Below, in pieces: positions 2,236-62,910 of a DNA stretch of 64,000 nucleotides. Position numbers and translations under genes: made by a program. The notes under the pieces were generated by a model. That model ran no database searches and was not told where the DNA came from. It was given only the letters and a program-made list of their open reading frames with translations. The DNA comes from Adineta vaga (lineage: Eukaryota; Animalia; Rotifera): contig CP075492.1 of NCBI GenBank assembly GCA_021613535.1, forward strand, positions 16,802,001 through 16,866,000, given 5' to 3'. The stretch's first letter is position 1, and each line of letters opens with the position of its first letter.

Positions 2236-2290
2236 TTGGGTGTGGCTGTGGGTGTTGAAAAATAATGACCTACTTTTCCCATACTCTCAA
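2236..2290. repeat. Telomere-like inverted junction element (degenerate)
   Basis: ttgggtgtggctgtgggtg ... cccatactctcaa. Confidence 0.45.
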
Positions 2291-3830
2291 TATAGCCACA
2301 CATACTAATGAACGTCGTTCAAGGAAAAGGAGTCGCATATGAACATTTTTCTCTTCTCTGTTTGAGAATGTCAAAAAATCGGGAAAACAAAAATTTAGAA
2401 ACGCGATAAAATAGCTCGATACAATTATTTCTCTATCTGTGTCTTTTGAAAGAGGTCGAAGGCACAATTATCGAGATGATCCATGTTCGCGCTCTCTTCA
2501 TTTTAAACAATCGTTTCAACAAGCACATAAACAAAATTCATCCCGATACGTGAGAGTTCATTTTTCGACGACAAACTCTCAAGCTCAAGACTGATGTGCG
2601 AAGGAAGACGATGATGAAAACATTGGTGATCCAGATACAACGGTGACATAGATCACGTCGAACTTGTTAAAAGACTCTTATTACTGATGCCTTCAAAGAA
2701 ATAAACTTATAAGATTGTCTCTCACATCCTCATCCTGTCTCCTCATTATGCCTTATATAATGAATAGTTTTTTTTCCTTCTCCGGATTTATTATTTCTGC
2801 ATTGTTTCCGAATTTCTTGACAACACTTTCTGTTTTGGGGTCATTCTAACTCTGGGGTGATCGTCTATATTTTTCGTTTTCATCTTTGTTTGAAATAGAT
2901 CATTGAATACTTATGTAACACTACAATGTGTGTTGTTTTCTCTTTCATATACATCGACTTTTTATATTATATTATTAATTAACAAAAACAAAACTCATCT
3001 GGTTTTTTCCCTTGCTCTATAGACACTTACATATGAATGTAGGAAGAAAGAAAAAAGCGTGCATTGTAAAAATTGTATGATCAAAATTATATAGACACTC
3101 CATTCAGTCACATAGCATCACCACACAATAGAATACCCACTACGATCTCGATCTTCTGGTATCCACATTCATTATGCTGCCTTCTAGTAATGATGGCATG
3201 CCACTATCACAGTTAGTCCGATGCCCTTCGGTTACGATTCGACAAACCTGTATGTTGAAACCGGGTTCTGTCTATTTGAATTCAATTTGCGTTAGTTTTT
3301 GAGACATCCAGTTGCTTTAAACTATTTTCATCTACCTAAAGGCATTTCTCAGTAATATTAATTCGATGTGAAGTGGCCCGAAAAGTTTTCTGTTACGCAC
3401 ATCTCGGAAATAATTATTGACAATCAGTCTCAACCAACAACTTCCATGCTGTAGAAAGATCTGACTTTTTAATTAGAAGTAGATAATGAAACGAAAAGAT
3501 TTTGTTTCGTTTCTTATTAAAAAAGTATTTTAATAGAAATTTTTGTAACACATACAAATGTATCAGTATGTATTGAGACGTTGTCAAGATTTTTCTCCAT
3601 GATTATGGATGTTTATTCCTCAAATAGCACGTGTGAAACAACAAGAGTAAGCAAATGTTCGACAGTGCCACTGCGTGAAGTACAGGAAAGTAAAATAAAT
3701 CGTTAAAACTTGTTCTCCGCACATGAAAATGAGTTGTGAAAATAGGAATGTGAGTAGACGCAGACGCAATTTATCGTCAACGATTTTAATTTGGTTAACA
3801 AGTCATTTCAATGAAGTGAACTTAAATCAA

Positions 3831-3899
3831 CTTCAGGGTGGGTGTGGGTTTGGGTATGAATAAGATGTAAATCTTCACCCACACCCACGCCCTCAAGAT
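3831..3899. repeat. Telomere-like inverted junction element (two arms)
   Basis: cttcagggtgggtgtgggtttgggt-spacer-cacccacacccacgccctcaagat. Confidence 0.9.
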
Positions 3900-3988
3900 C
3901 TGTAGGAAAACGAGTTATAATCTAGTAATAAATGATATTTTATTTTAAAATATATGTTCACTATATAAGAAAAGCTTAATGCATATAA

Positions 3989-6900
3989 TCAGTGCACCGA
4001 TACAATGCGAACGTTGCGAAAGCGAAAGCGTTGTTTAAGATTTTGAAAGATTTTCACAAGATAAGGAACGAGAAATCGAATTACAATTGATAAACCAGCA
4101 AATATACTCAAAAATGTCGTTAACAATTCCAATGCATCAAATCGATAATGATATATATAAGTACAATAATTTGGAGAACAACTATTATAAAAACTTTCAT
4201 AAGATATATTACTTATCCATGATTCAATAAACATTTCATGTGTCAATGTCTCAATTGTATCATAAACACTGAATCGACTCAATGAATCGTTCAAGAGTTC
4301 AAGCACGTCATAATCAAAAGTATCTAAATCTAATATATCTCGAACAATGTGAATGCATTTTGGAAAATAGAAACATGATAATGATGAAAGTAAAGTTGTT
4401 TCTAATAGATGACAAGCAAATATCAAACCTTGAATAATAACTGACCGATTATCAGTAATAATTTCTGCTGGTATTGAACATGTTCGTGAAGTAGAACAAG
4501 AACAACTTATGTTTTGTTTTATTTCATTATGTATAACCGGTCTAGTGATAAATGAACTGTTTGATTCTATATCTTCTTCAATTTTGAGTATATCCCAATT
4601 TGATGCAAATGTTCCTAATAGAGAATTTCCTTGTATAGTCATACGTATAAGATCCAATGTTTGTGCAAAAATAATTGGTATTCTTTTTTGAAATTGATTT
4701 ATCGTTTGATTTATTTCGTCGATAAATTGTACTGAAGGTTGTAATTGATTAGTTAATATAGTTGATGTAAGGAAAATATCAATACTATCATCAATAGTAT
4801 CTTGTGATAATGAACAAAATAAAGTTAAAGATTCGACAAAGAATGGTGCCCATAATTGAAAATTTCTTTCATTTGAGACTTCGACCATTGCCTGGGTATT
4901 CGATCCTAAAACAACAAAGAACAGATTTTTCAAATTTTTCCATTTACAATTCTATTACCAGCAGTGAGAATTGTCAAAATCTTATCCGTTGTACAAGCTT
5001 CATGAAATTTATTCACTCGTAATTCATTAATAAATTCACCATATGGAATTGAAATCCGTGTACAAGGACAAACAATATCATCTTTTTGAAGATCTACTAA
5101 TAACTGTTGATAATCCATCATTGATGATACAGAATATGTTTTGGTTATACTACGTTCAACAATAGCTGTATAAAACAATAAAATACTAAGAGAAGTTAAA
5201 TAAAGAATTGAATAAATTCGAGTATAGATTTGTTGTTGATGAATCGACCTTTCATCGATTGATTCATTTCTAAATAAATTCATTGTTTTTATTGCTTGAT
5301 AAATATTAATGAAAAGATAATTGCCACGTCGACGATGACGTTCTTTCCACCAATGAATACAAGAAAAGAAAAGTTTGCCAAACAATGGCATAAGTAATCG
5401 AAAACCTTTGTTCAGACCGCCACATATAGCAATAAGAAGAAATAATGATGCTAAAAGATTCCGACGTTGTATTTTTGAGTATGTACAAGTTCTAGGTGCA
5501 CATTTATTATAAAATTGATCAAAATTAGTGTTGTTATTTATTGATATTTCTGAAAACATTTCACGAATTAATTCATTTGTTTCGATATCTTCATTAAACC
5601 GACTGGGCACTGATGCATTAAGAGCTTTAATATTTGGTGTAGATTGAGAATTAATAACGATTGAATAAGTTTCTTTAATGTATTGGAAATATGTGATATT
5701 GTACCACCAACTAATCTTTGAATTTTGAAATCCACTTAAAGGTGTGCAACCTATTTTGACTATTTTAAAAAATAAAGTTGATGGAGATTGATCAAAATAT
5801 GATGCATTTAAATACAATAAAGGTATAAGACGACAATCACCATCATAGGATACACATGAACACACACCTGCGGCAGTGAAATCAGTCTCAGAAAAACTTA
5901 AATAGATAGAATATGTAGGGAATATAATATCAAGTTGATTATCAATAGTTTCAGTAATCTGATAAACAACATTTGCTCCATTTAGAAAATGACTTCTACT
6001 GAATACAACATTGACCCAGTCAATCGTACGTGCAAAATTGTTTCGTGTTGTACTGATAAATGAATCAATTATTGTTTGAGTCTTCTGAAGAAAAACTGAT
6101 GGAGGAAGAACATGATCATTGATGAATTGAGTATTGATAAATATACGTTGTGCGTCATCGATATTCATTTGAATCATTGAACAAAAAGTTGATAAAAGTT
6201 GAAAATAAGAAGCACCTATTGTTCGAAAGTCACGAGTGCCATCAAAGCCTTCTTCTATTTCTGGAATAAATGTTAGATCTAATCGTGTCAAATAAGTTAA
6301 CCATTCAGATGAGACTAAATCACTTGAACATACTTGATGCGAAATAAATGTCACATTAAGAAATGATTTATATGGAATAGATATTTGTGAACAAGGACAT
6401 TGTAATGTTATTGAATGATCATCATACAATTGTAGATATGTAGTGAGAGATGGATCTTCAACGGTTATTAATTGATTTTGTTCAGTAAGGCAAATATAGA
6501 ATCCGACAATAATCGAAGAAATAATCATAAGAAGAATAAAGAATCTTGTGAATAATCGTTGACGATAGATATTATTAGGCGTACTTGGTGTTGAACTTTC
6601 AAAAATATTCAAAGAAAACACTTGTTCGTTGATATATTGTGGTAGAGATTGAATACGGGTCCATACAATGCGAACTAAAAATATATTCAGAACTCGATTG
6701 ATATGTCATTGAGAAAATGAAGTGCAACTTACTTCGGGATTGACGAAGTGTTTCAATTTGTGATACGATCGTATTCGGTAAGACACGATTTTTTCTACGT
6801 AATATAATTATTGCAATTAAAGGTGCAAAAAAGTTGATTCCAAATGACAAACCACCAAATATACCAATTATTGTTGTAACAACAAAAACAACATGAAAAC

Positions 6901-7990: not shown

Positions 7991-8499
7991 GGGCTCATCT
8001 TCACGACTTTCTGTAATTCACATATATATTTGTATTAGAAAGAAGGTTTTTCATCACCAATAACATCGTATAAAAACGATAAGAGAGAAGAAAACAGTAA
8101 AATACTGCTTTTCAATGGGAAAATTTAATCTTTATAGCAAATGTCCCAAGATAAATTATACCAACTGTTCAGACATTTTTCTTTCTGGAAGAAACATAAT
8201 GCAATCTTGAAAAGTGTTGACTCGTGTAGAACATTAAAAAAATAATAGTTACCATCTGCCATCTGTTATAGGAATCACTAATGTATGATCCATTCTCTTC
8301 TTTTTTGTTATCTCACCACTTTTCTCGTTCTCTTTTTATGTTATATATGTACACGTTCTTCGATTCTTTTGATTCAGTTGAATAAAGAGATCGTGCGTGA
8401 CTACACATACAGAAACATCTTTTCTCCCTCTCTCGAACGCTCTCTAATACCATCTAAATATTATGAGCTGTATCAATGCATATTGACATAACTGTTGTG

Positions 8500-9480: not shown

Positions 9481-9569
9481 AATATTCTTATCTATCAAAA
9501 CATGAAACATATATGCATTTTCATATTATTTTATAAAAATGTTGAGTAAACGTTTCGTTTTCAAATTCA

Positions 9570-10635: not shown

Positions 10636-10686
10636 ATCTTGAGAGCGTGGGTATGAATTGAAAAGAATACCCACACTCTCACCCTG
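10636..10686. repeat. Telomere-like inverted junction element (two arms, both GAGAG variant)
   Basis: atcttgagagcgtgggtat-spacer-atacccacactctcaccctg. Confidence 0.8.
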
Positions 10687-11630: not shown

Positions 11631-11764
11631 TGGGTGTGAGTGAGGTTTTCTTGTGCTCACACTCACACTCAATAACTCTATTATTTCGTGGGCAAAGGGA
11701 GCATCCATTAAATACTATAGACTCTAAATTATTTCTATTCTAAACACACCCACACCCTCAAGAT
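11631..11764. repeat. Telomere-like junction element (degenerate pair 11631-11672 plus a perfect C-rich arm 11744-11764)
   Basis: tgggtgtgagtgag...ctcacactcacactcaa; acacacccacaccctcaagat. Confidence 0.8.
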
Positions 11765-12000
11765 GCTCAAGCAAAGAACGTTACACAAGAAGCATGCATT
11801 TTTCGGACTAAAACTCCTACTCTTACGTCATCCACTATTTTCAAAGAGACTACGATAAAAATTTCAAGTAATTGCAGAAGACACTGCAAAATGACATCAT
11901 TTTTATCTTTATTGCTTAAATATGAAAAAAAGAATACCTTTTAAGTTATTTTGTCCAAGATTGGCACACTAAATACGTTAAGTTAGTGTGGAAACATAAT

Positions 12001-12972
12001 ATGGAGTATTTAATTTATGTAATTTGGTATATCGTGTCTATACCTGCGTGCGTAATTAATATAGTTCTTGGTGTATTGGCGATTTACTTTTTTAATGTTC
12101 GTCGTCGATGGCGAACAGTTGACAATCTGTTTAGATGTAATACAGCCGTAGTATTGATTATCTACTCTTTTATTCAATTAGTTTCTATTCGAATAACTAC
12201 ATCATACAATCCGCTAACACATGATATCAATCGTATGCTTTCTGGGTATATTCACGGTGTTACTTTGATATCTGTGCTTTGTTCATGTGTAATGGAATCG
12301 TTTTACAGTTTACATTATACTAAATTATACAAAAATGAAGAACTTCTTACTTGGCATTTTCATCAGCATTTGATTCTATCGAACTATGGCATCACTATCG
12401 TCACGTCTATTGTTTCAATTTGTCTTTTCGTCAATACCCGACTAGAAGTAGATTATTATTCTTGTTTAATAACGAGCCCAGGATTTTACACATGCATACT
12501 TTGTTTTACACTCCCAAGTATAATTCCACAACGAATATTTAAAAAAATATTTAACATATTTAAGACTTATTTCGGACCAAGATCAACTTTTTCAAGATAT
12601 TCAGGTAGGCGCCAAAGTCATTATATGACAACAACGGCAGAGACCAACATACGTCACTTAGAACAGGGAAAGTTAAAATTCGACTTGGATTCGATAATAT
12701 TCTTAACTCTTATAACAATTTTCGGACTTATTTTCTTTTTTCCGACGTATACACTAACACGTAGATTGCCGAAAGCAACATCTTTATTGATTTTGCTTAC
12801 ACTAGTACCTTTTTTCATACACAAAATGATTTTACCGTTCGCTATGGATCCTGAAATGGTTTCTTTCGCAGAATATTATTGCCCGAAACTGGTAAAATTT
12901 TATAAAAATGTTTATCAACCCGTTCATGTTATTAATGAACATCAAGAGTATCGACGACATCGATTTCAATGA
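12001..12972 (+). CDS. Divergent 7TM GPCR-like membrane protein, intronless
   Basis: ORF of about 323 aa from ATG 12001 with about 7 hydrophobic segments; canonical motifs are eroded. Confidence 0.6.
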   Translation: MEYLIYVIWYIVSIPACVINIVLGVLAIYFFNVRRRWRTVDNLFRCNTAVVLIIYSFIQLVSIRITTSYNPLTHDINRMLSGYIHGVTLISVLCSCVMESFYSLHYTKLYKNEELLTWHFHQHLILSNYGITIVTSIVSICLFVNTRLEVDYYSCLITSPGFYTCILCFTLPSIIPQRIFKKIFNIFKTYFGPRSTFSRYSGRRQSHYMTTTAETNIRHLEQGKLKFDLDSIIFLTLITIFGLIFFFPTYTLTRRLPKATSLLILLTLVPFFIHKMILPFAMDPEMVSFAEYYCPKLVKFYKNVYQPVHVINEHQEYRRHRFQ

Positions 12973-13180: not shown

Positions 13181-13207
13181 CCACATCCACACCCACACCC
13201 TCAAGAT
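13181..13207. repeat. Telomere-like junction element (C-rich arm only)
   Basis: ccacatccacacccacaccctcaagat. Confidence 0.85.
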
Positions 13208-15789: not shown

Positions 15790-15863
15790 ATCTTGAGGGT
15801 GTGGGTGTACATGAGTCTAATCTATGCTCTTAACCCACACTCTCATCCATCCACCCTCAAGAT
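15790..15863. repeat. Telomere-like inverted junction element (two arms)
   Basis: atcttgagggtgtgggtgt-spacer-acccacactctcatccatccaccctcaagat. Confidence 0.9.
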
Positions 15864-17574: not shown

Positions 17575-17597
17575 TACACACCCCACCCACCCTCAAT
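17575..17597. repeat. Telomere-like junction element (C-rich arm only)
   Basis: tacacaccccacccaccctcaat. Confidence 0.7.
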
Positions 17598-17974
17598 ATG
17601 AATTAGAGTGCATGTAGAGAGAATTTGGTGTTGTAGGAGGAGCCTTATACAGAGTGTCCATTCGGAGAGGAGTTGTTGTTACAGTGGGGTGTTGGAATAG
17701 GAGGTGATTCGGAGAGTAGTTAGAGTGGTGTATAGCTGCAGTTGTCTCTATCGGATGTACACCGCGGAACATTCTCTGGTGATCGATGGAAAATTCTCAG
17801 GGACATCTGCACCTACATCTCCTGTCGTCTTCTAAGATGCCAAGTGTTGATCAAGTCTGTTGTATACATGCAATTAAATTCGAACAATGTTAGTATCGAT
17901 TAATATCGTGAATAATGTTGTTACATTTATATTTTTCAGCATTAGTTTGTGTCTTTGATTTACTTCCTGACAGG

Positions 17975-18039
17975 AAGAGGGTAGGTGTGGATGGGTATGC
18001 GAGTATTACATCTATCAAACACACCCGCACTCACCCTCT
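17975..18039. repeat. Telomere-like inverted junction element (two arms, diverged)
   Basis: gagggtaggtgtggatgggtatg-spacer-acacacccgcactcaccctct. Confidence 0.7.
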
Positions 18040-18706
18040 CCAATCCATACTTCCTAGAAAATTTATTTATTCAAAGCTCACACGAAATGGCAAGTCCAAT
18101 GCGCTCACATCATCGACTACTTAACATATGAGATTCAATTTCTATTTTAAAAATTGTACTGAGAACTACTAACTGTCCACAATGTCAGTCTTTAACGAAT
18201 TTCATCCAACCATTTATGAGAAGTATCATATGAAACTTTGTAAATACATTAAATTATCAGCGTTACCCTAGCTAATTTCGACGACCAGCTATAATAACAA
18301 TATCTTAAGCAATTTCCAGGCCCATCTAACACTAATTTCAATTCTTTTCAAAATATTTTGCAATCTCATGAATAGTAAAAATATTATACGTGAAGTATTA
18401 AGTCTGCCTCTCCGCAAGCTTCGTAGACACATAACAAATACAAAAGTCGACAGTTAAGAACACGAATGCTTCATATCGGAAAAAATACAGTTCATCAGCT
18501 TTCTCTTCTGAAAACCGAACGCATTCATTACGCCATGATTCAAAGATACGTACTACACAGAAATCATGTTTTCAAATTTGAACTATACTGCTCATTCATC
18601 TACTACAACCTCGACGCAGTATTTCAACCTATACACACCGAATAACCATTGTTCTATTCTGTTCTTATCAAAATATGTACTACGATTGAAAAAACTCCGA
18701 ACTTGT

Positions 18707-18767: not shown

Positions 18768-18795
18768 CATACACCCACATCCACACCCACACCCT
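18768..18795. repeat. Telomere-like junction element (C-rich arm only)
   Basis: catacacccacatccacacccacaccct. Confidence 0.8.
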
Positions 18796-18986
18796 GCAGC
18801 TATAAACTGATTGCCCCTAGGGTCAAACTGATTGTCTTTTGAATTTATGATTGTCTGGTCTTACACCAGAGCGGTAAAATCAGTCGAGGGTGAAGTGAGT
18901 CGTCCCGACGAGCGTTGTTTATGATTAAAAACAAAAGCTTAAATGTCTGAGCGCAAGAAAAGCGTTTATGAGTGTAATTTCTTTCA

Positions 18987-19457: not shown

Positions 19458-19857
19458 ACGCGAAACTGAATGGAGAAAATTTGGTTTTTATTTGCTCACG
19501 TGGATTTTTCAATTTCACTAGTAGCTGTTGGCGGCCAGATTCAAAGAGAGTGAAGCGTGAAATCTGAAACGCGTTCTTATATACAACCGTTACATTCACA
19601 TAAGATGTGCGCCACGGTTACTTGTACAAATAACCCACTCCTGAAAAGAAAAAGCAACGTTAAAAAACTGAAAGTTCATACACTTACTGATGCCCATTTT
19701 TTTTTCGTGAAGGAGAGTGTGGTGAAGCACATATCTTTAATGCATTTTTCCACTTTAAAAAAACTCTCATTTCTTTACAATAATGGGAATTTTTCCATGA
19801 TCTGTATATTTTATGTGTTGTCGCAGAGTTATACATTCGCCGAATGGAGGCAGTGCC

Positions 19858-19870
19858 GGTGTGGGTGTGT
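19858..19870. repeat. Telomere-like junction element (G-rich arm only)
   Basis: ggtgtgggtgtgt. Confidence 0.55.
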
Positions 19871-20079: not shown

Positions 20080-20100
20080 TTTCCCTCTGTCTTAAGCCAT

Positions 20101-23035: not shown

Positions 23036-23098
23036 GAGGGTGTGGATGTGGATGGTTGTATATATCATTTAACGTTCTAAACTCACACTCATACCCTG
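23036..23098. repeat. Telomere-like inverted junction element (two arms, diverged)
   Basis: gagggtgtggatgtggatgg-spacer-actcacactcataccctg. Confidence 0.75.
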
Positions 23099-25483: not shown

Positions 25484-25527
25484 TTGAGGGTGTGGGTGTG
25501 AGCATATCATCTTCACCCACACTCTCG
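25484..25527. repeat. Telomere-like inverted junction element (two arms)
   Basis: ttgagggtgtgggtgtg-agcatatcatct-tcacccacactctcg. Confidence 0.85.
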
Positions 25528-26229
25528 ATACGGAATTAAGTGTTTTTTTAGCGTAATTCAGATGGATTTCAGCGTAATCGGAACGCAATACAATGTAGTG
25601 AGGCTAGAATCTGGTTTAATGTTGACGTTATCCTTAGTATCCTAGAGCAATTGTTGTTGTAGTTTTGAGTAATCTCCTTAAAGTTCGTGTGATATATTAA
25701 TGCGTCCGACAGGACCTGGAGAGAAACGGTCGAATCGCCTGGGCTTTTCTTACTTTTCAGAAAATCTGGTCGCTCTGGTGTCGAAAGAAACGATTAAATG
25801 TCTATATGGAGAGTCACTTCAAAGATGAGTTTTGAAAGAGTTTCAGGTTGCTTGAATAAGTATTTGCAGGAACTTATAGTAAGAATTTTTTTATTATTTA
25901 AAAGGGCATAAGCGTTCTAATTATAATAACTTTTCAGTACAGAATAAGCAACAAATACACCACATTCCTTATCAATTTAAATATGTCATACCTTCTGGAA
26001 AAGCTAAAGAAAACAAGAGAGAAAGGAAGTGTATGTAGAATGAAATGATGACAAGTCTTAGTTGAAAACATGCAAGAGAAAGTTTCTATTAACTTTAGCC
26101 ACAATCGATAAGTAAGAAATTCGTAAATATTTTTGTGCTAAGATAAAGCCATATGATATTGAAGTCAGAAAAAACATTGATTCGTCTTGAAAATGGCATT
26201 TGTTTTCAATTAATTGTTTTGACACTATC

Positions 26230-29200
26230 GTCGAATTCTTTTTTGATAATGAACAATAGTTTTTCGAAGTTCAGCTTTATAGAAAGTAGATGGTAATATG
26301 AATATTAAAGATGTTATAATTGATGGAATAAATGAAATAAAATATCCCGAAAGATATAACTATGAATCATTATTTGATTTTAAACATTTTGATATATATG
26401 ATATAACTAAACGTGGAATTGAAAGAATAATTAAAACAATTGGTGCAATAAATAAATGTTTATGTTCATGAAATTGTTCACTAAAAATTTGTCGAGTATT
26501 CTTACGATTAGTTTTCATATTTGATTGTTGTTGAATTAATTTTGTTAAAAGAATAATTGTTGAAATTAAATTGATTAAAAAAGGAAGAAAAAATGAAAAG
26601 AATTTAAAATGTGATTATAAATCTGTAGATTTGATGAATAACGAACAATGCACCATATTCGTTTCATATCATTTAAATCTTCATTTTCTTCTTCAATCAA
26701 TTGTCGATTGATTGGATCATGAATATTTGTTCCAATAATCATTAAAATAAGAATACATATAATTAATTTAGCTAATTTTTTACTTTTTTTCTTTTCAAAT
26801 CGAACACCTTGACTAACAGTCATTGCTCTTTCAATAGCAATAAATGCATCTAACCAATGATCAAGATAAAGAGAAATTCGAAGAAAAAAATCGAATGAAT
26901 AACATTGAATTCGTAAGAATGATTGATTTGTTAAAATATTCATTTGTGCTAAAATTAATATCAAAAATTTCAATCCGAACATTATTGTTGTTAATAAACT
27001 CGTTATTGATGTTCCTAATAAATATAAACCATAACCAACTTCTCGAATAATGGCTCTCTGAAATGTAATTAATGCAATAATACTATTGATTAATCCAATA
27101 ATAAAGAAAAATATCGTTAATATTAAACTAAATTTCACAATAGATGATTGAGACATGAAATTTAAATTTGGAATAATATGATAACCTAAAATAGCATCAA
27201 GTGATAAACCAAATTCACTTGTTGTAAATTGACATCGTTTTCCATAATAACATGATTGACAAGAACATATAGATCTAGTTGGACATTTTAAACTATCTCG
27301 AAAGTATTGACCATGATTTTCACAAACATTTTGACTTGAACAATCAAATGTTTGATTATGATTAAATTCAAAACAATTAGCCAAACGTTTCTTAGTTTTA
27401 TGTTGATAACATAAACAAAAATGTTTATCATCATGAAAACAAGAAAGATTTAATGATTGATTTAAACAGGGTAAATGATAATATTTCATTCGACGAAGAA
27501 TATCAAGTTTAACAAATGTTTCATTAAAGATTTCATTTATTGAAGGACAACGATCTGATGGATTAATTGTTATTAATTCATCTTTCAATGATATATTCTT
27601 ATTTAAAACAGAATAGAAATAATAATTTTTCTTCGAATTCTCTAAGAAAATCAAATGAAATATTTGTGACCAAAATAATGTTATTATTTTCTGTTGAAAA
27701 TGATGAATTGGTTGAATTATTGTAGTTCTTATCGGATTAGCATCTTTTAATATTTGAATAAAATGAATAAATATTGATTGAAAAAGAATAATATCATCAT
27801 GAAATGATATTCTTAAATGATAATTTTCTTTTAATTCACATCGATCTCCACGATAACCTTTTAAACAAATACAAATAAAGCTTTCTTTCAATGTAATCTG
27901 ATCATTGTATACAATACACTGACCATCATTTTGACAGGTCGAATTTTCCATGTCACATATGAAATGAGTAAGAAGACATCGAGGACCAAACTTATTCCTA
28001 GAGCAAATACATATCGATCGATTATTTACAGTTTTTCCAAGACATAATGAATCGGATGAACATGTATAAGTATGTTTAATATGACAAAATTTCCCAGACC
28101 ATCCTTCTTTACATTGACAAAAATATTCATCTATATTGGAATATTTCATACATTTTCCATTTTGACAAGAAATTAGAGAACATTTTGGGGAATTTTCATT
28201 TTTTCCTGGAATTTCAATGATCATTGGTAAACGATAAACAGATAGAAAGACAAATATTAATGGATATAAATAACTAGCTCGATATTCTAACGAATGTTTC
28301 TGATAAATATCAATATGTATAAAATATTGTTTTGTTGCATCATTTGATCGATTTGAATAAAATAAATGATTGTTGAATTTTGCTTGACAATGTTTAATTG
28401 ATAAATAATTATATTGTTCAAATGAATGAATATTTCTTTCAGTTGTATTATCAATAAGCAATATATTAATACTAAATAATGTTTGCCAAGAATCAGATAA
28501 TGTTCGATATTGAATTTCAAGACTAATACGTTGTTTTTGATATTGACATTGTGAACCATAATAGGTTGGTGAACAAAGGCATGTATATCTTTTCGAACTA
28601 TTTTTACTAGTTGCCCAAATACGAACACCAATTCCGCCATTACAGGCATATTCAGATACATAGTTGAATGTAAAAGGTGGTAAAGTGACAGTTATCGAGA
28701 ATTCATTCGTTTTGCTTGGAATTATCGTTCCATCATGATTGTGATTTATTGAAAAATATTTTCATTTATTCGACAGACATTGCCACATTGTATTCATGCA
28801 AAAATCAGCAATAAAACCCAATGATCGATTGTCCATTTTTACCATACAGTTCTTTATTGGTCTAAACGATATTTCGGAAGACCAGGTCATATGTTCGAGA
28901 CACCTGCATGGTTCACTAATACACTTTTCAACAGTTGATTGAGAGGTACAATGAACTTCTTGGTCAGAAGGACATAGATTTGGTTCATCAAAAGTATCGT
29001 AACAATCAATTATACCATTATTGATTTTTTCAATAGGTAAACATATCATTTGTTTTGTAACAAATGAAATACACGCATGAAAATTTAAAGGACATTTTAA
29101 TTTCAAATTTGATGGACAATCAGTTTCATCTTGACCATCTGGACAATTCCATATTCCATCACATTGAGTATAATAATTATTACATTCCCAATATTCACAT

Positions 29201-30718
29201 TCAGTTTCATCTGTTATTAGTTGATTATTAGTAAGATTTTCATAGATTTCTGTATAACCATCACATAGAGTTTGAAATGATAAAACGTGTTTATCGCCTA
29301 TGGCCAGATTTGGTTCGTCTTCTGTATAAATAAGTCGTTCAATCATACAGTGTGGGTATCCATCATTAACTTCTCTCTTAAGAATAAGTTTATTAAGCAT
29401 TGGACATTTAAACTGTTCATGTTGTGGTCGTAGTTTTATAAAATAGTCATTTTTGTTAAATATATCTTCATCATCGAGATAAGGACAATCAATATGTTTA
29501 TCTCTGAAACGAAACGCAGGAATACATTTAATTGATCCAAAACATTGATACATATCTGGTTCACGACAAAAGATTGAAGATGAATTAATACTTAGGTGAT
29601 AACTTCCATAAAACTGATACACTTTATATAATATTCTATTAAAATCCAATTCAGTACTTGATTGTATAATATTATTATTTTTCAGAAACTTCTTTGACCG
29701 AAAACATGTTTGATTATTAAAAACGATAACTGTTACATCGTTGGAGAAATTTTGATATTGAACAAGATTAAAACAAATATATGGATAACGATAATTTTGA
29801 ATAATATCATATTTCGCATAGAGTAAATATATATCAACGGATAAAATTGAAATATTTGGAAAATAGAAGAAATCGGGACATTGACTTTCAATTACAATTT
29901 TACATCGATCATTTTTGCACATATCTTTACACAATTTGAATGTATTATCGGGTACTTCAAGAATACATTTCATTGCTAATTGACAGTCGATTGAGATTGA
30001 ATTATTTTCTATTGAATAAAGTTTTTGGATTAAAACTTCATTTCGTCCATTTTCACAAGAACGTGAGAAAAACAAACGTGGGCAAAATATAAAATCGTCT
30101 CCAAAAAACGAAAGAACAACGTGTAGACCTTCATCAGAATGATCAAGACAATCACGTGTAAATACAAGATCGTGATAAAATTCTAATGGTATACATTGTC
30201 CATTATTGCATTGAAATTCATTATCTTTACATTTATTCATTTCTAATTGCCAACAATGTTGTTCATCAATTCCATTATTAAGACAATCAATTTTTCCATC
30301 ACAAATTTCAGTCCAATGTAAGCATAAGAAATTCAATCTGTAATTGCAATTCAACTCATTGTAACATGTTAAATCCACTTTCATAAATCGAGTCATAAAA
30401 TAGAAATCCAGAATCAGTTTGCTGAGAATTTCATCAGAAGATACTGGAAATTCAAATTCTTACTGACACATTCGACGAAATTTTGGCAGCGAACAATTAT
30501 AATAAATCGTTTGTCCAATTGACGAATCATTTGATGTCTGATAGTTGATTTAGATAAGATTGATAATCTTCAATGAGATCAATTGGTGCAGACCAAAGCA
30601 ATAATTGTTGAGAAGTTATGTTATTCTTCGCGAGATTAGCAAAAGTGAAGTTTGGAAAGGAATTCTTTTCATCAATATGCAACTGTGATGGTACTTCATT
30701 TAAACAAAAATAAAACAT
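26230..30718 (-). pseudogene. LDL-receptor class A / EGF-repeat GPCR with several frameshifts
   Basis: LDLa repeats (ICDGKIDCLNNGIDE, CDGIWNCPDGQDE), EGF repeats (CQCKEGWSGKFC, CICLKGYRGDRC) and a 7TM with AIERA, split over ORFs 30527-30718, 28762-30396 and 26575-28461 plus a downstream frame. Confidence 0.85.
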
Positions 30719-31072
30719 TTCATATTGCTCTGTTACAGAATTTGCTTTTGAATTTGTTCCGTTTAGAAAAGCTTGTGAAAATGTTAATCTTTGAAAGACT
30801 ATCTCAGAATGAATTTAAAACAAGAAGAAAACCCTAAAATCGAACAATATTTTCATTCAAAAGAAAAGTCTTGCAACAAAGGAATCGTTAATTTAGTGAA
30901 ATCCATCTTTAAAATTTGAATCTTGACGATTTTCAGTGATAAATTCGTTTTTCAGCGAGAAATGTCTTATGTAATTTCACCGTTAGAATATCTCTAGTAT
31001 TTTCAATAAAGGAAGTGCGAAAATGCTGTCGATACCAACGTGCAGTGGACATGTCACAGTACTGATATCATG

Positions 31073-31126
31073 CTTGAGGGTGTGGGTGTGAGAAACAGAG
31101 GAATAGTCACACCCACAGCCACCCTC
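31073..31126. repeat. Telomere-like inverted junction element (two arms)
   Basis: cttgagggtgtgggtgtga-gaaacagaggaatag-tcacacccacagccaccctc. Confidence 0.9.
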
Positions 31127-35732: not shown

Positions 35733-35818
35733 TTGAGGGTGTGGGGTAGGTCTGGGTCTGGGTGTGTTTATTCTGTACTCTCATCTACACCTACACCCGG
35801 ACCTACCCGCACCCTCAA
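35733..35818. repeat. Telomere-like inverted junction element (two arms sharing a private GGTAGGTC variant)
   Basis: ttgagggtgtggggtaggtctgggtctgggtgtg-spacer-ctacacctacacccggacctacccgcaccctcaa. Confidence 0.9.
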
Positions 35819-36229
35819 CCACTCTTGATCCAAACATAAGGGCCACTAATATATTTCTGCAAATGTATTTAAATCTTAATAAAGTTGAAACACAATCCTA
35901 AAACACAAACAAAAATATTTATATGATCAAAGAAACTCACTAAGAAATCCGAAATAGCCTTTGGTCTACAAAAGAAATTGAAAAATTAATTTAAAATCAC
36001 AGCTTCTAGACACATATTCACTATATCTCTGATGGGATAACGAGGGAATCATATAACTAGCTAGTCCATTCGTCGTTAGAGCATCAACTACCAACTATTA
36101 TAGAGCAGAAAGAGAAAAGGCAATAAAAAGAAAACAGGTTCATCCACTTAAAACCAACATTACATACCTTATTCAAATCACGGTACAACAAAAATATTGC
36201 ATCACATTTTTGATTCCAGTGATACTCAA

Positions 36230-37560: not shown

Positions 37561-37849
37561 AACTATTCTAGCAACTACGAAATCTCAAAATGCTTTACGG
37601 AACTATCAATGGTTTTGTATCAAAGATTCTAAACTAATAAAGTTCAGTACAAGATGCGCGGAATTTCGCTAATGTTTCGATGTTTGACTTCAGAACTTCC
37701 GTGAAATTTCGGAGCTTAACCCTTTTTGGCCGGCTACCAGAAGACAACAAGAAAAAGATGTTAATTCTGCATATTCTCTGTGTTCTATGTATGAGGACTA
37801 TGGAGTTTTAGCGCCAAGTTTAAAAAACTAGCATTGAGCCGTATGTCAG

Positions 37850-38442
37850 CATGTTGCCTTTTGATAACATCCGGCCGTACGAGTACAAACAGGTGAGACA
37901 ATTCACTCCATTGTCCTCCACGGAAGCTTAGTAATTTAGTATTAAGTGTGTTCTATATTATCAAAAGAGAACATATTTAGCTCATCTGTCCATCTCATGA
38001 AGCGTCGCAGTGCAATATATTTCAATAAAGCCCCAGTATTGACAGAATACTATGAATTTCATCAGTTCGGTCGAATTCTCTTACGATCACTTACCAAATC
38101 AATGAGCTACTGTCGAAATTTGTGATGTTTTATGATAGATAGTTCTCACAACAACAGTATGGTGTGCTATAAATCTTGTCGGAAACTCATTGATTTGGTG
38201 AGTGATCGTAAGAGAATTCGACCGAACTGATGAAATTCATAGTATTCTGTCAATACTGGGGCTTTATTGAAATATATTGCACTGCGACGCTTCATGAGAT
38301 GGACAGATGAGCTAAATATGTTCTCTTTTGATAATATAGAACACACTTAATACTAAATTACTAAGCTTCCGTGGAGGACAATGGAGTGAATTGTCTCACC
38401 TGTTTGTACTCGTACGGCCGGATGTTGTCAAAAGGCAACATG
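37850..38442. mobile_element. Fold-back element with 257-bp near-perfect inverted arms (MITE-like)
   Basis: 37850-38106 is the reverse complement of 38186-38442 with few mismatches; 79-bp spacer. Confidence 0.85.
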
Positions 38443-41780: not shown

Positions 41781-41835
41781 ATCTTGAGGGTGTGGGTGGG
41801 TGTAAAAGAGGAGAAGATACCCACACCCACACCCT
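41781..41835. repeat. Telomere-like inverted junction element (two arms)
   Basis: atcttgagggtgtgggtgggtgt-spacer-acccacacccacaccct. Confidence 0.9.
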
Positions 41836-42632
41836 AGGTGCTTTTGAGAAAATCTAACTACAATAATTCTACTTAATACACCGTTTTACCATTGAAAAAT
41901 ACGATTATTATTTACGATTAATTCTTCTTTTAAAATACGTAATATATTTCATTTAAATAAATAAAAAATAATGAACAAATGAATAGCGTTTATTCGCACA
42001 TCATTGACAAGGAAAATATTGTACTATTTTCTATTTTTTTTCAATCGAATAAATGTAATTTAATATTTATTTTGAATTCTAACATCTATTGTAATATCTG
42101 TGTTAATCCTAGATTACAAAAATATAATGCTATTTTTGCATTACCTCATTAAAAATTATTCAATGAAAGACGATGTGAATGAAGAAAATGTCTTTATTCA
42201 CATTCATAAGATTCAAATATACGAAGAAAAATGAAGTGAACATAAAAAATGTGATCAGTATTTTTAGTAAAATACATAATTGTGTTCGATCGAGCATAAC
42301 CCGATACTTTATCACTATAGTATGCCCTTCAATAAACATTAATTTTTAAAGATAAAAAAATATATATATCCATTTATGAATCATATGTGACGAAAAACCA
42401 AATACCTATATTAGAAAGTTTTACATGGCAAATATAATAAACGTGTAAAGGTCTGTTTATGTTCAATAGAAATTATCTTTTTCATGAAAAAAAGTATGAT
42501 TGTATAAGTTATATACTTATTAACTTTTATGTAATAGATGAGTTTTTCTTTCAGAAAAATTTATTTTTATCTATAGACGAAACAAATAATTTTCTGTTAG
42601 TTTCAATATAAGAATCAACAGTCAATTTTGAG

Positions 42633-45600: not shown

Positions 45601-48225
45601 TGACAGTACTAGCACCACTACTGACAGCACTAGCACCACTACCGAGACCACCAGCACCACCAGCACTACCGAGACCACCAGCACCACCAGCACTACCGAC
45701 ACCACCAGCACTAGCACCACTACTGACACCACTAGCACCACTACTGACACCACTAGCACCACTACCGAGACCACCAGCTCCACCAGCACTACCGAGACCA
45801 CCAGCACCACTAGCAACACTACCGAGACCACCAGCTCCACCAGCACTACCGACACCACCAGCACTAGCACCACTACTGACACCACTAGCACCACTACCGA
45901 CACCACCAGCACCAGCACCACCACCACTACCGACACCACTAGCACCACTACCGACACCACCACCACCACCACCACTACCGACACCACCACCACCACCACC
46001 ACTACCGAGACCACCAGCACTAGCACTATAACAACAACAACCACAACTCAAACTACTACGACAACTTTAGCACGTAAGAAAAAGTTATACGATCTCTATG
46101 TGAAAGATTCGCCGAGTTTCCTATTTATCACCCTGATATTATATGAGTTATGTTAAAATAGATTTAACTAAGATTTCTCGATGGTTTTATTCATGAGATG
46201 TAGATTAAATACGTATGTGTTTAATAAGAAAGTAGAAAAGACATAGTTTTAAATGATTTTTCTTAGATCTATATATATAAAGAAGAAAGTTTGTCTGTCT
46301 GTCTGTTCGCTATGCATTCAGTCGCTGTAATAGCTACGATCACCAAACTTTCCACAATACTTCCCTCGGTCCCGAGGAAGGTCGACATGGGGTTAGAATG
46401 GCCATCAAGGGATGGCGGTGGCAGCGTGTGTGAAATTTCGCTCTCAAGATGGCATATAGGAATGAGGGTGGGTGTGGGTGTCTGCATCCAGGATAGACAA
46501 CTACAAAGCGTGGGTTGGGTTCTCAAAAAAACTGAATCTGGAGTGAAATGACTACTCTACCTGTATAGAGTAGAAGTGAAGTTTATAAAGTAGAGAATGA
46601 CTTGCAGCGGGACAGTGGGTGTAGAATGGGACCTGAGTTGCAGCGGGACAGTGGGTGTAGAATGGGACCTGAGTTGCAGCGGGACAGTGGGTGTAGAATG
46701 GGACCTGAGTTGCAGCGGGACAGTGGGTGTAGAATGGGACCTGAGTTGCAGCGGGACAGTGGGTGTAGAATGGGACCTGAGTTGCAGCGGGACAGTGGGT
46801 GTAGAATGGGACCTGAGTTGCAGCGGGACAGTGGGTGTAGAATGGGACCTGAGTTGCAGCGGGACAGTGGGTGTAGAATGGGACCTGAGTTGCAGCGGGA
46901 CAGTGGGTGTAGAATGGGACCTGAGTTGCAGCGGGACAGTGGGTGTAGAATGGGACCTGAGTTGCAGCGGGACAGTGGGTGTAGAATGGGACCTGAGTTG
47001 CAGCGGGACAGTAGTAGTGGATTTAATAGGAACAGAGCTGTATGTCGTATGCATAGCGAGACAAGACCATTAGGAAAGGGTTAATGAAGAGATGTGAAAA
47101 GTTCTTAAAAAAAGACCTGGTGAATGACGCGAAAAGGGTATGAGAGGAGCCTCAGTACAGAGGAGAAAGACGTGGGAAAGACAGGTGACGCGCGCTGACT
47201 GACAATCTGAAGGATTACACTTGCTAATGCAGATTGGGAAAGGAAGATGTGAGGATTTTTTTATACACGACGGGTAAATACCAACGGAGAGGTCCGGTGA
47301 GTGATGAGAAGAGCATTGCTGTAGATGGAAAATGTAAGTTGTGTCCTCTTTGCAGCGGGTATCTCCGCTAGTGTTTTATAATTCACCTCGAAAAAAGATG
47401 CATATCTTCTTCTTTCACTGTCTCAACAATTTAGTATTTTTAGTGTACTCAAAGAAGTGAGTACAGTACTAGAATCGGTCAATGTAGTCGGCAATTTACG
47501 CGATAACTCTTCAAAATTACATCCGATTAAGTTGAATTTTTTGTGCGCAGAATTGCTTCATCAATATCTCGGTCGAGTTTAAAGATGGGAAGGATCCCTC
47601 AAGAAATGGCTGAATCATCCTAAGAATTCTCATTAATACCAGTCTATCTCTGAACAGGAGTACAGGAATTTTTTACAAAATAATTATCTCACTGATGTTT
47701 ACTAAATATATAAGTTGACACAGTTTGATTGCAGTACCTATAAGGTTTTCTAACTAGTCAAAAGAACTACCGAAAAAATACAAGTCATCAGAAAACATTT
47801 ACACCAAAAAGATTTCTGATGTTAAATTTGATATAGAGCTATTTCCGAATGACTTAACACTTTTGTACACTTTTTCCAGTAAACATAAATCTCGGATAAA
47901 ATCTGAAATTTCCACATTTATTTGATTCTATTATTTAGCTACGTGTGCTGATAAGTGTCCCAGCGGTGCTTCGTCTAGTGATACAACAACCTGTGGTCGA
48001 ATTTGTGTCACTAATACCGTCTATAATGTTGGAGACACAGGTCTTTGTGCTACTAATTCTACGTATTGTCCTGATGGTAATTACACCATACATCGTAATG
48101 CTTATAGTACTGTGAATTTTGATTGTGCCAATGCTTTTGGTTGTAATGCTTATGGAGGCTGTTGTACTATTATGGTTTCAGTAGCTTTAAAGTATCTTTG
48201 GTGTATTTCATGTTCATATAACTGA
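42633..48225 (+). CDS. Mucin-like protein: N-terminal TM, furin-like RRRRDA site, ~2.6-kb Thr/Ser repeat, Cys-rich C-terminal exon
   Basis: Short exons from ATG 42633; T/S-rich frame from 43440 (TTSTTSTTD units) with a few frame slips; GT-AG intron 46074-47938 joins in phase (LAP-TCADKC); last exon ends WCISCSYN* at 48225. Confidence 0.75.
46268..47371 (+). mobile_element. Non-autonomous Helitron in the mucin intron
   Basis: A|TCTATATATATAAAG...(gtct)n 5' end; 3' hairpin agcgg-gtatct-ccgct ending CTAG|T; inserted between A and T with no TSD. Confidence 0.8.
46602..47011. repeat. Perfect 36-bp minisatellite, about 11.4 copies
   Basis: tgcagcgggacagtgggtgtagaatgggacctgagt repeated identically. 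Confidence 0.97.
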
Positions 48226-49703: not shown

Positions 49704-49755
49704 AGAGTGTGGGTCCAAGATAAAAAAGGCTACTCTCATTCACGCCAGCACCCTC
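49704..49755. repeat. Telomere-like junction element (degenerate)
   Basis: agagtgtgggt ... cacgccagcaccctc. Confidence 0.45.
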
Positions 49756-50550: not shown

Positions 50551-50621
50551 ATCTTGGGTGTGGGTTGGGTGTGGGTGTGAATGAGAGCATAGTCTTTTTA
50601 ATCTCACATCCATCCTCAAGA
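50551..50621. repeat. Telomere-like inverted junction element (two arms)
   Basis: atcttgggtgtgggttgggtgtgggtgtga-spacer-ctcacatccatcctcaaga. Confidence 0.9.
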
Positions 50622-51304: not shown

Positions 51305-51449
51305 TTATCTTTGTTGATTTTGATTTATGTAGAATTTTTTCATTTATCTTAAATAAATTCATTTTGAAGATATACTTTGCAATATGTAAGAGAATTCGTA
51401 AGAAAACTAAAGAATATTTATCAGATATTGATCACATGATTCAATGGCC

Positions 51450-51514
51450 ATCTTGAGGGTGGGTGTGGGTGTGAGTATCAGATAAATGTAGTACCCATAC
51501 CCGCACCCTTTCAA
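51450..51514. repeat. Telomere-like inverted junction element (two arms)
   Basis: atcttgagggtgggtgtgggtgtgag-spacer-tacccatacccgcaccctttcaa. Confidence 0.9.
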
Positions 51515-52050: not shown

Positions 52051-52270
52051 ATGATGAAGAATTTTCGCTTGCTAAAATTCTTTTTCTATTTCAATTTGGA
52101 AATCTTTTTGTAAATGCAAATGAATTCCAATGTGATAGAAGTTTATCATGTGGTTGTGGTGAAACGAATGTTCAGTCTCGTGAACAAATAAATCCTTATA
52201 GTTGGTCAATGGTTGTTTCAGTACGTTTTAATAATAATCATATTTGTAGTGGTTCAATTATAAATAAATC
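52051..52270 (+). pseudogene. Trypsin-like (S1) serine protease N-terminal fragment
   Basis: Manual translation ...NANEFQCDRSLSCGCGETNVQSREQINPYSWSMVVSVRFNNNHICSGSIINKS, ending just before the expected LTAAHC. Confidence 0.75.
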
Positions 52271-52335
52271 AGGGTGTGGGTGTGGTTGTGGATAATGAAT
52301 CAATACCCATATCCACCCACACCCACACCCTCAAG
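52268..52335. repeat. Telomere-like inverted junction element (two arms)
   Basis: atcagggtgtgggtgtggttgtggat-spacer-acccatatccacccacacccacaccctcaag. Confidence 0.9.
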
Positions 52336-52370
52336 CAACAGTTTATTTGTCAAAAGTTTATGGTTTTCCG

Positions 52371-60287: not shown

Positions 60288-60738
60288 ATCTATATTAAAA
60301 GATATCTAATTTTTCGGTTTTTTATTTCACTACTATACAAACCGTGTCACTTCTTGCTGTTCTGATTATCATAAAATTACTGATACTACGTGCGAATAAA
60401 TTGGAGGAAATAGTATATCTGCGAAAAGTATCACGCGAGAGAAAATAGAAGAAAGTATATCAGGAAGGCTTTTCGCAAAAAGAAGTAACCAAGAGAAGAC
60501 AATTGAGAGACTAACGAAATAGGTGAAAAATAAAATCAGCGAAGTGTAAAATAGTCATTTCTCATCTTAATCAACATGAAAATAATACTACAAGTACATA
60601 TTATAATGTTTCGAAAAGCTTACGTATGTAATTCATACTTTGCTAAGAGAAGCATTTCGATTAGGAATAATCTAATAGAAAGAATAATGTATTCTTCAAT
60701 ATCTTTTTTTTTATTACTTAGATTTTATTCAACTTTTA

Positions 60739-62322
60739 ATGGACACATACAACAATAATTGTGCTCATACAGTACCTTTAAAAATCAAAATCATATGTAG
60801 TATATTAATATGGTTTCCAATTTTATTTCCATTTATAACAATACATTATTTTCCACATGCTACTATTATTTATAATATAATCATATCCATTTATATTATC
60901 ATCAGTCACTTATTAACATATGGAACTTGTTTTACTATTTTTAGGAAACAACAGAAAATTATTTATGAATTTTTTCGCAGCAAAAACTGGAGTGAAATAA
61001 AGAATAATTACATTGAAAATCGACGAATCGGAATAAATAATAACAATGAAGAAATATTACACATGGTTATCATACCTATCTATAAAGAAAATCCGAATAT
61101 TGTGGAAAATACATTAAAATCATTAATAAAACAAAATGTTCCAATGATTATAGGCATCGGATTAGAAGAACGAGAAACGGACAGTAATACAAAATACGAT
61201 GATATCATAAAACAATATGAGAATCATTTTATTAAAATAATTAAAACAATACATCCAATGAATTTAAAAAATGAAATACCTGGTAAAGCATCGAATTGTA
61301 ATTATAATGCTCAACAATTAGTTAAATTTTATGAAGAAAATCATATAAATTTAAGATGTCTCTACAAACATGTAATGATAACTGTATGTGATTGTGATTC
61401 AATTTGGATAAATGATTATTTTTTATACTTAAACTATTTGTGTGAACAAAATAATATGAAAAATTTCAATTACATTGCTTATGTACCAAATATCACTAAT
61501 TTCCAAGATTTTTCATTGAATCATATCTTAAGTAATTGGGTGTCTGTTCTTCGTTCAATAGGTACGCATGGACATTTTTACTTTCTTGGTTATGTTCGTG
61601 CGTTTGTTAGTGAATATCATATTCCATTAGAATTATTAAAAAGAATTGATTTTTGGGATAGTGATTTAGTACAGGAAGATATACATATGCACAACAAGTT
61701 AGCGATATTAGATGAAAAACATTTTGTTGTCAAACATACTTTTCTCCCATGTGATAATCAGATTCCAACAGATATCAATTCATTTGTTGGAAGTTTTCAA
61801 ATACTTTGGAATCAAACATCACGTTGGAATTTATTTATTTATGAATTGTATTATTTATTTTATGAATTATTATTGAATATCTTTGGCATCAAACGTTATG
61901 GAAATTTTCGTACAAACACATCGAAAATTTTTGTACAAATTATTAATAATTATGAAAATTTATTCTTTTTTGGCATGTGTCCTATTTCAAATAATATCTT
62001 TTGGTTCTTTTATCTACATATTTGGAATGAACATTATCTTAATAGTATCGTTTATCATTTATTAAATAATATTCAACCATGGTTTATCATCATACATCTC
62101 TTCTTAGGAATTCTATATGCTGCATTCATTTGGTATGCAAGTTTCGAACATATCAAAGATAGACCATATAATTGGATAAAATTTACAATTTTCTTATTAG
62201 GATTTATTCCTCTTCCATCATTATTCTTCATTTGTCAAGCTATTAATCTAACAAATGCATGGATACAAACATTGAAGAGTAATCAAACTCATTCGGAGTC
62301 GGCACCAAAAGTTCTTTTCTAA
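60739..62322 (+). CDS. GT2-family integral-membrane glycosyltransferase, intronless
   Basis: 527 aa with IIPIYKE, GKASNCN, DCD (DxD), QED and QTSRW (QxxRW) motifs plus N- and C-terminal TM helices. Confidence 0.85.
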   Translation: MDTYNNNCAHTVPLKIKIICSILIWFPILFPFITIHYFPHATIIYNIIISIYIIISHLLTYGTCFTIFRKQQKIIYEFFRSKNWSEIKNNYIENRRIGINNNNEEILHMVIIPIYKENPNIVENTLKSLIKQNVPMIIGIGLEERETDSNTKYDDIIKQYENHFIKIIKTIHPMNLKNEIPGKASNCNYNAQQLVKFYEENHINLRCLYKHVMITVCDCDSIWINDYFLYLNYLCEQNNMKNFNYIAYVPNITNFQDFSLNHILSNWVSVLRSIGTHGHFYFLGYVRAFVSEYHIPLELLKRIDFWDSDLVQEDIHMHNKLAILDEKHFVVKHTFLPCDNQIPTDINSFVGSFQILWNQTSRWNLFIYELYYLFYELLLNIFGIKRYGNFRTNTSKIFVQIINNYENLFFFGMCPISNNIFWFFYLHIWNEHYLNSIVYHLLNNIQPWFIIIHLFLGILYAAFIWYASFEHIKDRPYNWIKFTIFLLGFIPLPSLFFICQAINLTNAWIQTLKSNQTHSESAPKVLF

Positions 62323-62812
62323 AAAGAAAATTAAACTAAACTTAAAAACTAGAATTCTATATTTTAATCATTCTATTTATTGACCATGGCATCGTTTTGT
62401 TTTTGTTCTAAGAATTCTCCTTATCAAATGATGTCATTTTTATCTATACGTAATTAGAAGCATAAGCTATATGCAACTGATGTTCATACCTTAAATACGT
62501 TGTATCTGCTCTCTATAACATTCACAATACAGAAAAGAAATGAAATTATACAGCCAAGGCCAAAAAAGTGTGCAGATATGAGAAAATCATAAGGATTTCA
62601 CTAAGGAGGCAATCTAAATCAAAGAGAACTCCAATAGAACAGACTGTTCACGAAGGTAGAATAATCCATTAACAGCTTGATTCATTATTCAATTGGATAC
62701 ACATGTACATATCAATACGTACAATGTTATCTTCTTATCATGTGAAATATATTTGACACTCATGCGATTTGTTCATGTGATACGACGAGAGAGAAAACAA
62801 TGACATACTCGA

Positions 62813-62910
62813 TTGAGGGTGTGGCTGTGGTTGAGGATATACGTTTAATCTAAACTCCCTCAGCCACATCCTTACACCCACACCCACACCCACATTCACA
62901 CCTTTAAGAT
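62813..62910. repeat. Telomere-like inverted junction element (two arms, long C-rich arm)
   Basis: ttgagggtgtggctgtggttgagg-spacer-cctcagccacatccttacacccacacccacacccacattcacacctttaagat. Confidence 0.85.

Follow-up and report, generated by a model that had tools for sequence, protein, structure and literature searches.

The stretch of DNA studied here, called the window below, comprises 64,000 nucleotides of the bdelloid rotifer Adineta vaga (C3:16,802,001-16,866,000). It has a G+C content of 32% and lies 3.5 Mb from the right end of the 20.35-Mb contig C3, in a genome of six contigs and 100.8 Mb. Between its genes are about 21 short elements built of a G-strand telomere-like arm, a short spacer and a C-strand arm; 11 of these are clearly two-armed, 5 are decayed and 5 consist of a single arm. 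We favour, with moderate confidence, the reading that these elements mark seams left by break-and-rejoin repair of subtelomeric DNA, where a copied palindromic unit links ends that telomerase had healed.

According to Pfam, the window contains rhodopsin-type receptors, an EF-hand protein, an LDL-A/EGF receptor, and TPR and FG-GAP genes; the receptors and the EF-hand protein had been correctly named in a preliminary description made from the letters of the stretch alone. Open reading frames (ORFs) were searched exon by exon, without joining them into spliced gene models. Among the 20 large ORFs of the window, to which this search was confined, Pfam detected no domain of a recombinase, transposase or reverse transcriptase, and no Rfam family matched in the window.

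The arms consist of the host's own telomere repeat, as the preliminary description had supposed. (TGTGGG)n is the bdelloid telomere repeat (PMC8494291, the chromosome-level Adineta vaga assembly; PMC7943196), and contig C4 starts with a terminal C-strand array of it. This left end of C4 (L027, C4:1-4000) is the only contig end that opens with a terminal array, and a G-strand array of 160 nt, directed inward, follows 2.5 kb in. The right end of C1 (L022, C1:18142848-18146847) is a tandem repeat of about 530 bp with telomere-like tracts embedded in each unit.

Telomere-like tracts in the G-then-C geometry were present at every coordinate given in the preliminary description, and a 20-nt arm with at most 3 mismatches matched 11 times in the window compared with 0 in 100 shuffles. 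We also sampled 312 kb, made up of the window, 20 paralogue loci and 12 contig ends. In this sample 35 pairs of G-then-C arms lay within 45 nt of each other, and none had the order C-then-G. The strict two-armed pattern gave 458 matches genome-wide, nearly all of them less than 4 Mb from a chromosome end, against 3 for the control in the opposite order; this and the other genome-wide figures are pattern counts and lower bounds, and together with 324 kb of sequence they form the basis of the census. Contigs from independent sequencing runs cover the element at 11744 with both its flanks, as well as the spacer of the element at 15790, and the elements are therefore not assembly artefacts. These contigs, obtained for a 6000-nt stretch, are 250-640 nt long and break at repeats, which makes them of no use for finding empty sites; RNA runs covered next to none of the same stretch.

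Anatomy and distribution of the units

The arms measure 9 to about 150 nt and are composed of irregular TGTGGG, TGGG and TGAGGG units, and both arms of an element can differ greatly in length. The outer edge of many arms is (AA)CCATCTTGA, with the motif 5' of the G tract, and this conserved outer motif is longer than the preliminary description had it. The 18-mer CCATCTTGAGGGTGTGGG matched 394 times genome-wide at no more than 1 mismatch on both strands, compared with 0 in the control, and ATCTTGA was found at the edge of 29 of the 144 arm-like tracts in the sampled sequence but at only 3.5% of random positions. The canonical unit of about 66 bp opens with CCATCTTGA and 15 nt of repeat, has a core of 18 nt in the middle, and closes with its opening part in mirror image. 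A pristine copy (L038) has a perfect 24-nt stem, a loop of 17-18 nt and a total length of about 66 bp; across the whole unit it is 93% identical, over 70 nt, to L046 on a different chromosome. The centre of the unit is most conserved and the ends are variable.

The outer motif occurs on either side of the core, on both or on neither, unrelated to core polarity, and it is thus not confined to one side by that polarity. Motif-bearing arms were not clearly different in length. Two further candidates were rejected: CCATCTTGA is not a target-site duplication, since its copies are inverted and not direct, and a Helitron-like reading is ruled out by a 3' end that is not CTRR.

The preliminary description held the spacer to be different in every copy. 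Spacers do differ in detail, but they are not random and belong to recurrent families of asymmetric cores, 17-23 nt long. The core of family A, TTAAGAGTATAG(T/C)CTGAC between GGG and (T/C)CAC, has about 110 copies at no more than 3 mismatches, against 4 in the control, and is found in both orientations on all chromosomes, with no orientation bias per chromosome arm. Further core types are TAGATAGATGTA(A/G)TAC(TCTCA), and GAGTGAAGAAGATGTAC or AAAGAAGAGGAGATAC. Because sequence blocks are common to all three types, these look like diverged versions of a single core of about 20 nt. When 35 unselected two-armed elements were scored with a cut-off at the 95% level of shuffled spacers, 13 carried a family-type core (about 2 expected by chance), and the remainder had spacers that are unique or too decayed for assignment.

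The flanks of 20 family A copies showed no likeness beyond the element; the unit therefore spreads independently of its surroundings. A pattern search that allowed both arrangements found only one asymmetric combination of core halves and essentially no mirror-image half-core pairs. The core was therefore copied whole, and the absence of such pairs rules out that each half is an independent run-on product from each end.

Among the clearly two-armed elements of the window, the one at 15790-15863 carries the outer motif on both sides of a family A-type core, of which a 5-nt variant is present in other sequencing runs, and the core at 50551-50620 is family A-like. The element at 51450-51510 has CCATCTTGA at the start of its left arm and a family B core, the one at 41781-41836 has a core of family C, and the one at 3831-3899 combines a core like that of family C with the right-arm terminus CCCTCAAGAT. 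ATCTTGA starts the left arm at 10636-10686. The LDL-A/EGF receptor gene has one element, at 25484-25526, about 46 nt away from where its last ORF ends and another, at 31073-31125, on its upstream side, and the element at 52268-52337 lies about 35 nt past the last ORF of the ABC transporter gene. Longer arms are found at 62813-62910; the remaining clear element, at 35733-35819, is treated below. Degenerate two-armed elements lie at 2236-2300 (G tract 2238-2252, C arm decayed), 11631-11680 (with a core like that beside 13181), 17975-18040 (family B-like core), 23036-23098 and 49704-49755, the latter being weak. Single C arms are located at 11744-11764, where the canonical outer motif is preserved and the other arm is gone, at 13181-13207, with the full motif TCAAGATGGTT, a core-like inner stretch and a G arm that is nearly lost, at 17575-17600 and at 18768-18801; a single G arm lies at 19855-19869.

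Several intergenic gaps of the window have no element, and the units between elements hold 1 to 4 genes. In this respect the division into gene-sized cassettes given in the preliminary description is corrected. The LDL-A/EGF seven-transmembrane receptor gene (window 25572-30814; L001-L020) has more than 30 paralogues of 66-82% identity, which are mostly subtelomeric. Among 20 paralogue loci of this receptor family, 9 had no arm within 10 kb, and arm positions differed among the rest. These armless loci rule out that the elements are part of the flanked gene.

The check for enrichment in subtelomeres gave a clear result, as 96 of the 100 listed matches to the family A core lie within 4 Mb of a chromosome end, a zone that makes up 48% of the genome (binomial p ~3e-26). 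By chromosome, the same 100 listed matches are distributed as 48 on C3, 23 on C1, 19 on C5, 4 each on C4 and C6, and 2 on C2. A metagenome scan with the family A core gave 0 matches. With the 18-mer terminus it gave 49, of which 46 were chance matches in high-GC bacterial contigs. The other three are low-GC contigs from moss metagenomes (L094, L101 and L104) in which the CCATCTTGA terminus lies beside long telomere-type arrays; one of them contains a two-armed unit, and another has its start within an array. All three probably represent bdelloid DNA from the environment.

Other features of the window stand apart from the units. ORF 11986-12969 had no homologous protein at E<=1e-20, a result that is uninformative on longer or shorter relatives. 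Between 43178 and 46153 a long stretch has several frames open on both strands and no Pfam match, and is probably a low-complexity or repetitive coding region. At 37716-37900 another dispersed repeat begins, with many copies of 70-81% identity; it directly abuts the end of a segment paralogous to C5:1330626-1332161.

Homology at the element boundaries

Six boundaries were informative, namely W35735, W35825, L001:4245, L005:991, L005:6247 and the left flank of L038. At all six, homology to paralogues ends at the outer edge of the arm, and no alignment crosses an element. On the right side of the element at 35733-35819, the segment from W35825 onward has counterparts on C5 and C4 (L055, L056), with identities of 89% and 78%, and the homology between these two loci extends at least 700 bp upstream past the point matching W35825; in the window, a C arm and then unrelated DNA precede this point, with an alignment score at the shuffled level. 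On the left side, the upstream flank of the FG-GAP gene aligns with four paralogues (L058-L061) up to W35721-35736, beyond which the paralogues continue together and the window goes into the G arm. The element therefore joins two truncated segments of different origin, the FG-GAP flank on its left and a segment of another family on its right.

The receptor family provided further joints. In L001, a receptor copy 82% identical to that of the window is cut exactly at a long C arm (L001:4245). L005 (C3:18.8 Mb) contains a 5.3-kb segment that includes the entire receptor gene and shares 93% identity with L002 (C3:0.42 Mb). A C arm borders this segment on the left (991) and a G arm on the right (6247), and L002 has no arms there and runs into other sequence. 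At the right edge of this segment the repeat follows directly after ...AAGAGTGT, while L002 reads ...AAGAATGT and then differs, so that the joint looks like telomere addition onto a GT-rich end. On the left of L038, a 91% paralogue stops within 2 nt of the unit end and does not have the right flank. TTGAGGG or TTGAAGGG stands at the start of two de novo joints, and a further joint starts with GAGGG behind native T's; these starts suggest that the TGAGGG variant is the first repeat laid down.

Empty sites and target-site duplications, which the preliminary description had named as the mark of an ordinary miniature inverted-repeat transposable element (MITE), were looked for and not found. None of the six informative boundaries had an empty site (0/6), and no target-site duplication was seen in the six copies with both outer motifs (W15790, L010, L033, L038, L041 and L046). 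A clean insertion was recognized at 46257-47383, on the forward strand, where a 1.1-kb dispersed repeat is inserted relative to a paralogue at C3:942,560/942,562; the method could therefore detect clean insertions. The G tract at 46463, previously counted as a single arm of the family, lies inside this repeat, which is not a family member. The repeat has more than 50 copies of 83-96% identity and includes twelve 36-bp tandem repeats. It holds CTCAAGATGG, 10 nt and then the G tract, with an exact CCATCTTGAGGGTGTGGG at this place in other copies, and may be related to the terminus of the telomere-repeat unit.

Paralogue comparison thus shows each arm to sit on a segment that is truncated relative to its paralogues, with the telomere tract pointing outward and unrelated DNA beyond. 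Given these outward tracts on truncated segments, the arms resemble short telomere tracts on ends that were once broken, and gene-sized segments come to be bounded as 5'-C-arm...G-arm-3'. Compared with the preliminary description, the spacer families, the range of arm lengths with the outer motif, and the homology ending at arm edges are new.

Origin of the elements

The data also show that the whole core was copied to hundreds of sites, the flanks of which are unrelated. We infer that telomerase first adds short tracts to broken ends and that a copy of an existing unit then bridges them. A small RNA or cDNA could serve as the template for this copy and might stem from telomerase RNA, as in the telomerase-RNA-containing interstitial telomeric sequences (TERC-ITS) of vertebrates. 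By another route, a healed G tail would invade the arm of a unit elsewhere and copy the core and part of the C arm, before annealing with the G tail at the opposite end. Arms ending in CCATCTTGA would then be joints at the very end of the unit, and arms without the motif joints inside the repeat. Such a model would explain the strict geometry, the variable arms, the lack of target-site duplications, the random polarity and the unrelated flanks. The variable arm length and the irregular repeat units, such as telomerase makes, also count for seams of repair.

The earlier proposal of scars of telomerase-capped fragments is upheld by the six boundaries at arm edges and by the L005 copy, but such scars do not account for a conserved asymmetric core that was copied whole. 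A more specific version, which we regard as tentative, is a dedicated bdelloid end-joining pathway: broken or incoming fragments would be capped by telomerase and stitched into subtelomeres via a templated palindromic adaptor, consisting of the core and the CCATCTTGA terminus and possibly derived from telomerase RNA or a small hairpin RNA.

Several points weigh against repair seams. With paralogues lacking for most flanks, only six boundaries are informative; one gene family partly determined which loci were chosen, and the evidence on the joints comes from paralogues within one assembly. The CCATCTTGA motif is missing from the only true terminal junction of the assembly, and the side of the motif is independent of core polarity, which a simple one-primer cDNA model does not predict. 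Moreover, breaks that recur at fragile palindromes could mimic homology ending at the arms.

This last point leads to a rival explanation that we consider rather unlikely but would take seriously, in which the unit is a tiny non-autonomous mobile element of about 66 bp (foldback, MITE or hairpin retro-element) whose arms later became fragile or prone to recombination, so that breakpoints piled up there. A canonical unit with defined ends, near-identical copies on different chromosomes (L038 and L046), cores that form subfamilies as transposon families do, terminal inverted repeats (the 24-nt perfect arms of L038) and the unrelated flanks all fit a mobile element, and interstitial telomeric tracts are known to promote rearrangements (PMC11626172). 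However, the copies with both outer motifs lack a target-site duplication, and no empty site was seen; at L038 the flank homology stops at the unit end and the paralogue is without the other flank. The centre is best conserved and the ends are variable or truncated, the reverse of what is expected for a transposon that needs its ends, no transposase or reverse transcriptase was present among the 20 large window ORFs, and an extra event is required at each informative copy. An untemplated telomere-telomere fusion, or the end-joining of healed ends with random filler as spacer, would also give the G-then-C geometry, variable arms and paralogues truncated at arm edges. Yet the 18-nt core recurs about 110 times with unrelated flanks, the cores form related families and the outer motif is found on some 394 arms. 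These observations contradict plain fusion as a full explanation and make it highly improbable, even if it could account for the copies with unique spacers.

Selection for a function in cis was also considered, the elements being putative paired binding sites of a telomere-repeat-binding protein, with a role as boundaries or insulators, promoters or terminators, or else breakage-and-healing sites like the SFE (sequence for elimination) of Oscheius tipulae, in which neotelomeres are seeded at the conserved sites of a degenerate palindrome (PMC13060919). The tight placement beside gene ends agrees with such a role, and a cut in the spacer would give both products a terminal telomerase seed. Against it stand the 9 armless loci among the 20 paralogue loci of the flanked gene, the many intergenic gaps of the window without an element, the free decay of arms and cores, and the very uneven spread over the chromosomes, and we judge a cis-function improbable. 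Still less credible to us is an integron-like cassette system that moves genes by site-specific recombination at the palindromes. The sites are indeed palindromic, and an arm-bounded, gene-sized segment is 93% identical to its unflanked source (L005 and L002), but gene orientation is mixed, the junctions with unique DNA fall at variable points in or outside the repeat with no fixed crossover point, and telomere tracts follow broken sequence directly, with GT microhomology at the point of addition. Together with the lack of a recombinase among the 20 large window ORFs and the armless paralogue loci, this also speaks against the attC-like sites of the preliminary description. As readings of the elements, programmed breakage and integron-like recombination have no support here.

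If the elements are repair seams, they bear on how DNA is built into bdelloid subtelomeres, which collect transposons, rearrangements and horizontally acquired genes. The several hundred seams would be a direct sequence record of fragment joining, with an outward tract on each truncated segment and a copied core between, and could be counted, dated from the decay they show and followed across haplotypes and species for comparison. The constant CCATCTTGA beside the repeat predicts, if it derives from telomerase RNA, the neighbour of the template in that RNA (template, then ...UCAAGAUGGUU), and a searchable template or donor is predicted by the core. Should new seams appear after irradiation or desiccation, the pathway would be open to experiment. 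Adaptor-mediated end joining, if true, would explain mechanistically how gene-sized pieces are shuffled and how chromosome ends capture foreign genes.

Comparison with known systems

No published description of these units was found in a search that did not reach key papers on bdelloid telomeres. Short, dispersed, intergenic multi-copy palindromes are familiar as MITEs and foldback elements, as bacterial repetitive extragenic palindromic (REP) sequences and bacterial interspersed mosaic elements (BIMEs), and as the attC sites of integrons. The rotifer units differ from them in that no target-site duplication, empty site or linked transposase or integrase was found in the sequence searched, and in that their ends are less conserved than their centre. 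In the SFE of Oscheius tipulae, the two halves of a degenerate palindrome serve as seeds for adding telomeres to either product of a break (PMC13060919); its breakage and healing have been shown experimentally at few subtelomeric sites, whereas the rotifer arms are already full telomere tracts.

Athena elements and neotelomere additions (PMC13564844, PMC8557442, PMC3846280) share with the units the organism group and the repeat, the tracts on broken or truncated ends and the subtelomeric position. In A. vaga lines, telomere repeats and Athena fragments have been described at deletion breakpoints and called scars, and neotelomeres were found at breaks (PMC13564844), in agreement with the first step of the proposed model. 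Athena, an endonuclease-deficient Penelope-like element, has its tracts in one orientation and a retroelement body, while the rotifer units are inverted pairs of about 50-300 bp and non-coding. Among ciliates, Tel-1 of Tetrahymena is a telomere-bearing transposon with inverted telomere repeats at both ends. Internal segments with inverted telomere-repeat ends and the C strand at each 5' end, as between the rotifer arms, are also known from the telomere-bearing elements (TBEs) of Oxytricha (PMC4724952). TBE-type elements are transposase-encoding Tc1/mariner elements with target-site duplications; here the segments are host genes and the tracts lie on broken sequence. No encoded transposase was found between the arms among the 20 large window ORFs; the bounded segments carry receptor, EF-hand, TPR and FG-GAP genes, and the L005 segment reproduces a receptor gene of the host.

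The closest likeness is to the interstitial telomeric sequences (ITS) and TERC-ITS of vertebrates, which are also short internal telomere tracts laid down in break repair (PMC2246262, PMC8537989). TERC-ITS were reported from 41 loci in 30 vertebrate genomes, with a flank derived from the telomerase RNA beside the template, and for the head-to-head loci (3 of the 41) telomerase action on both sides of the break was suggested (PMC8537989). At the Xenopus type C locus, the flank derives from the sequence immediately downstream of the telomerase-RNA template (PMC8537989), and CCATCTTGA 5' of the G tract has the position of this flank; by analogy, both CCATCTTGA and the core are possibly derived from telomerase RNA. 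Vertebrate ITS are rare, mostly one-armed, simple insertions with an empty orthologous site. The rotifer units, in contrast, number in the hundreds, are head-to-head as a rule, and have a conserved core between the arms and unrelated segments as flanks. A one-step insertion between contiguous flanks, as for ITS, was not seen at any of the six boundaries, where the paralogue continues differently in every case, a comparison that involves paralogues only. With these differences, the rotifer units are best read, by analogy, as the bdelloid counterpart of the interstitial telomeric and TERC-ITS repair insertions of vertebrates.

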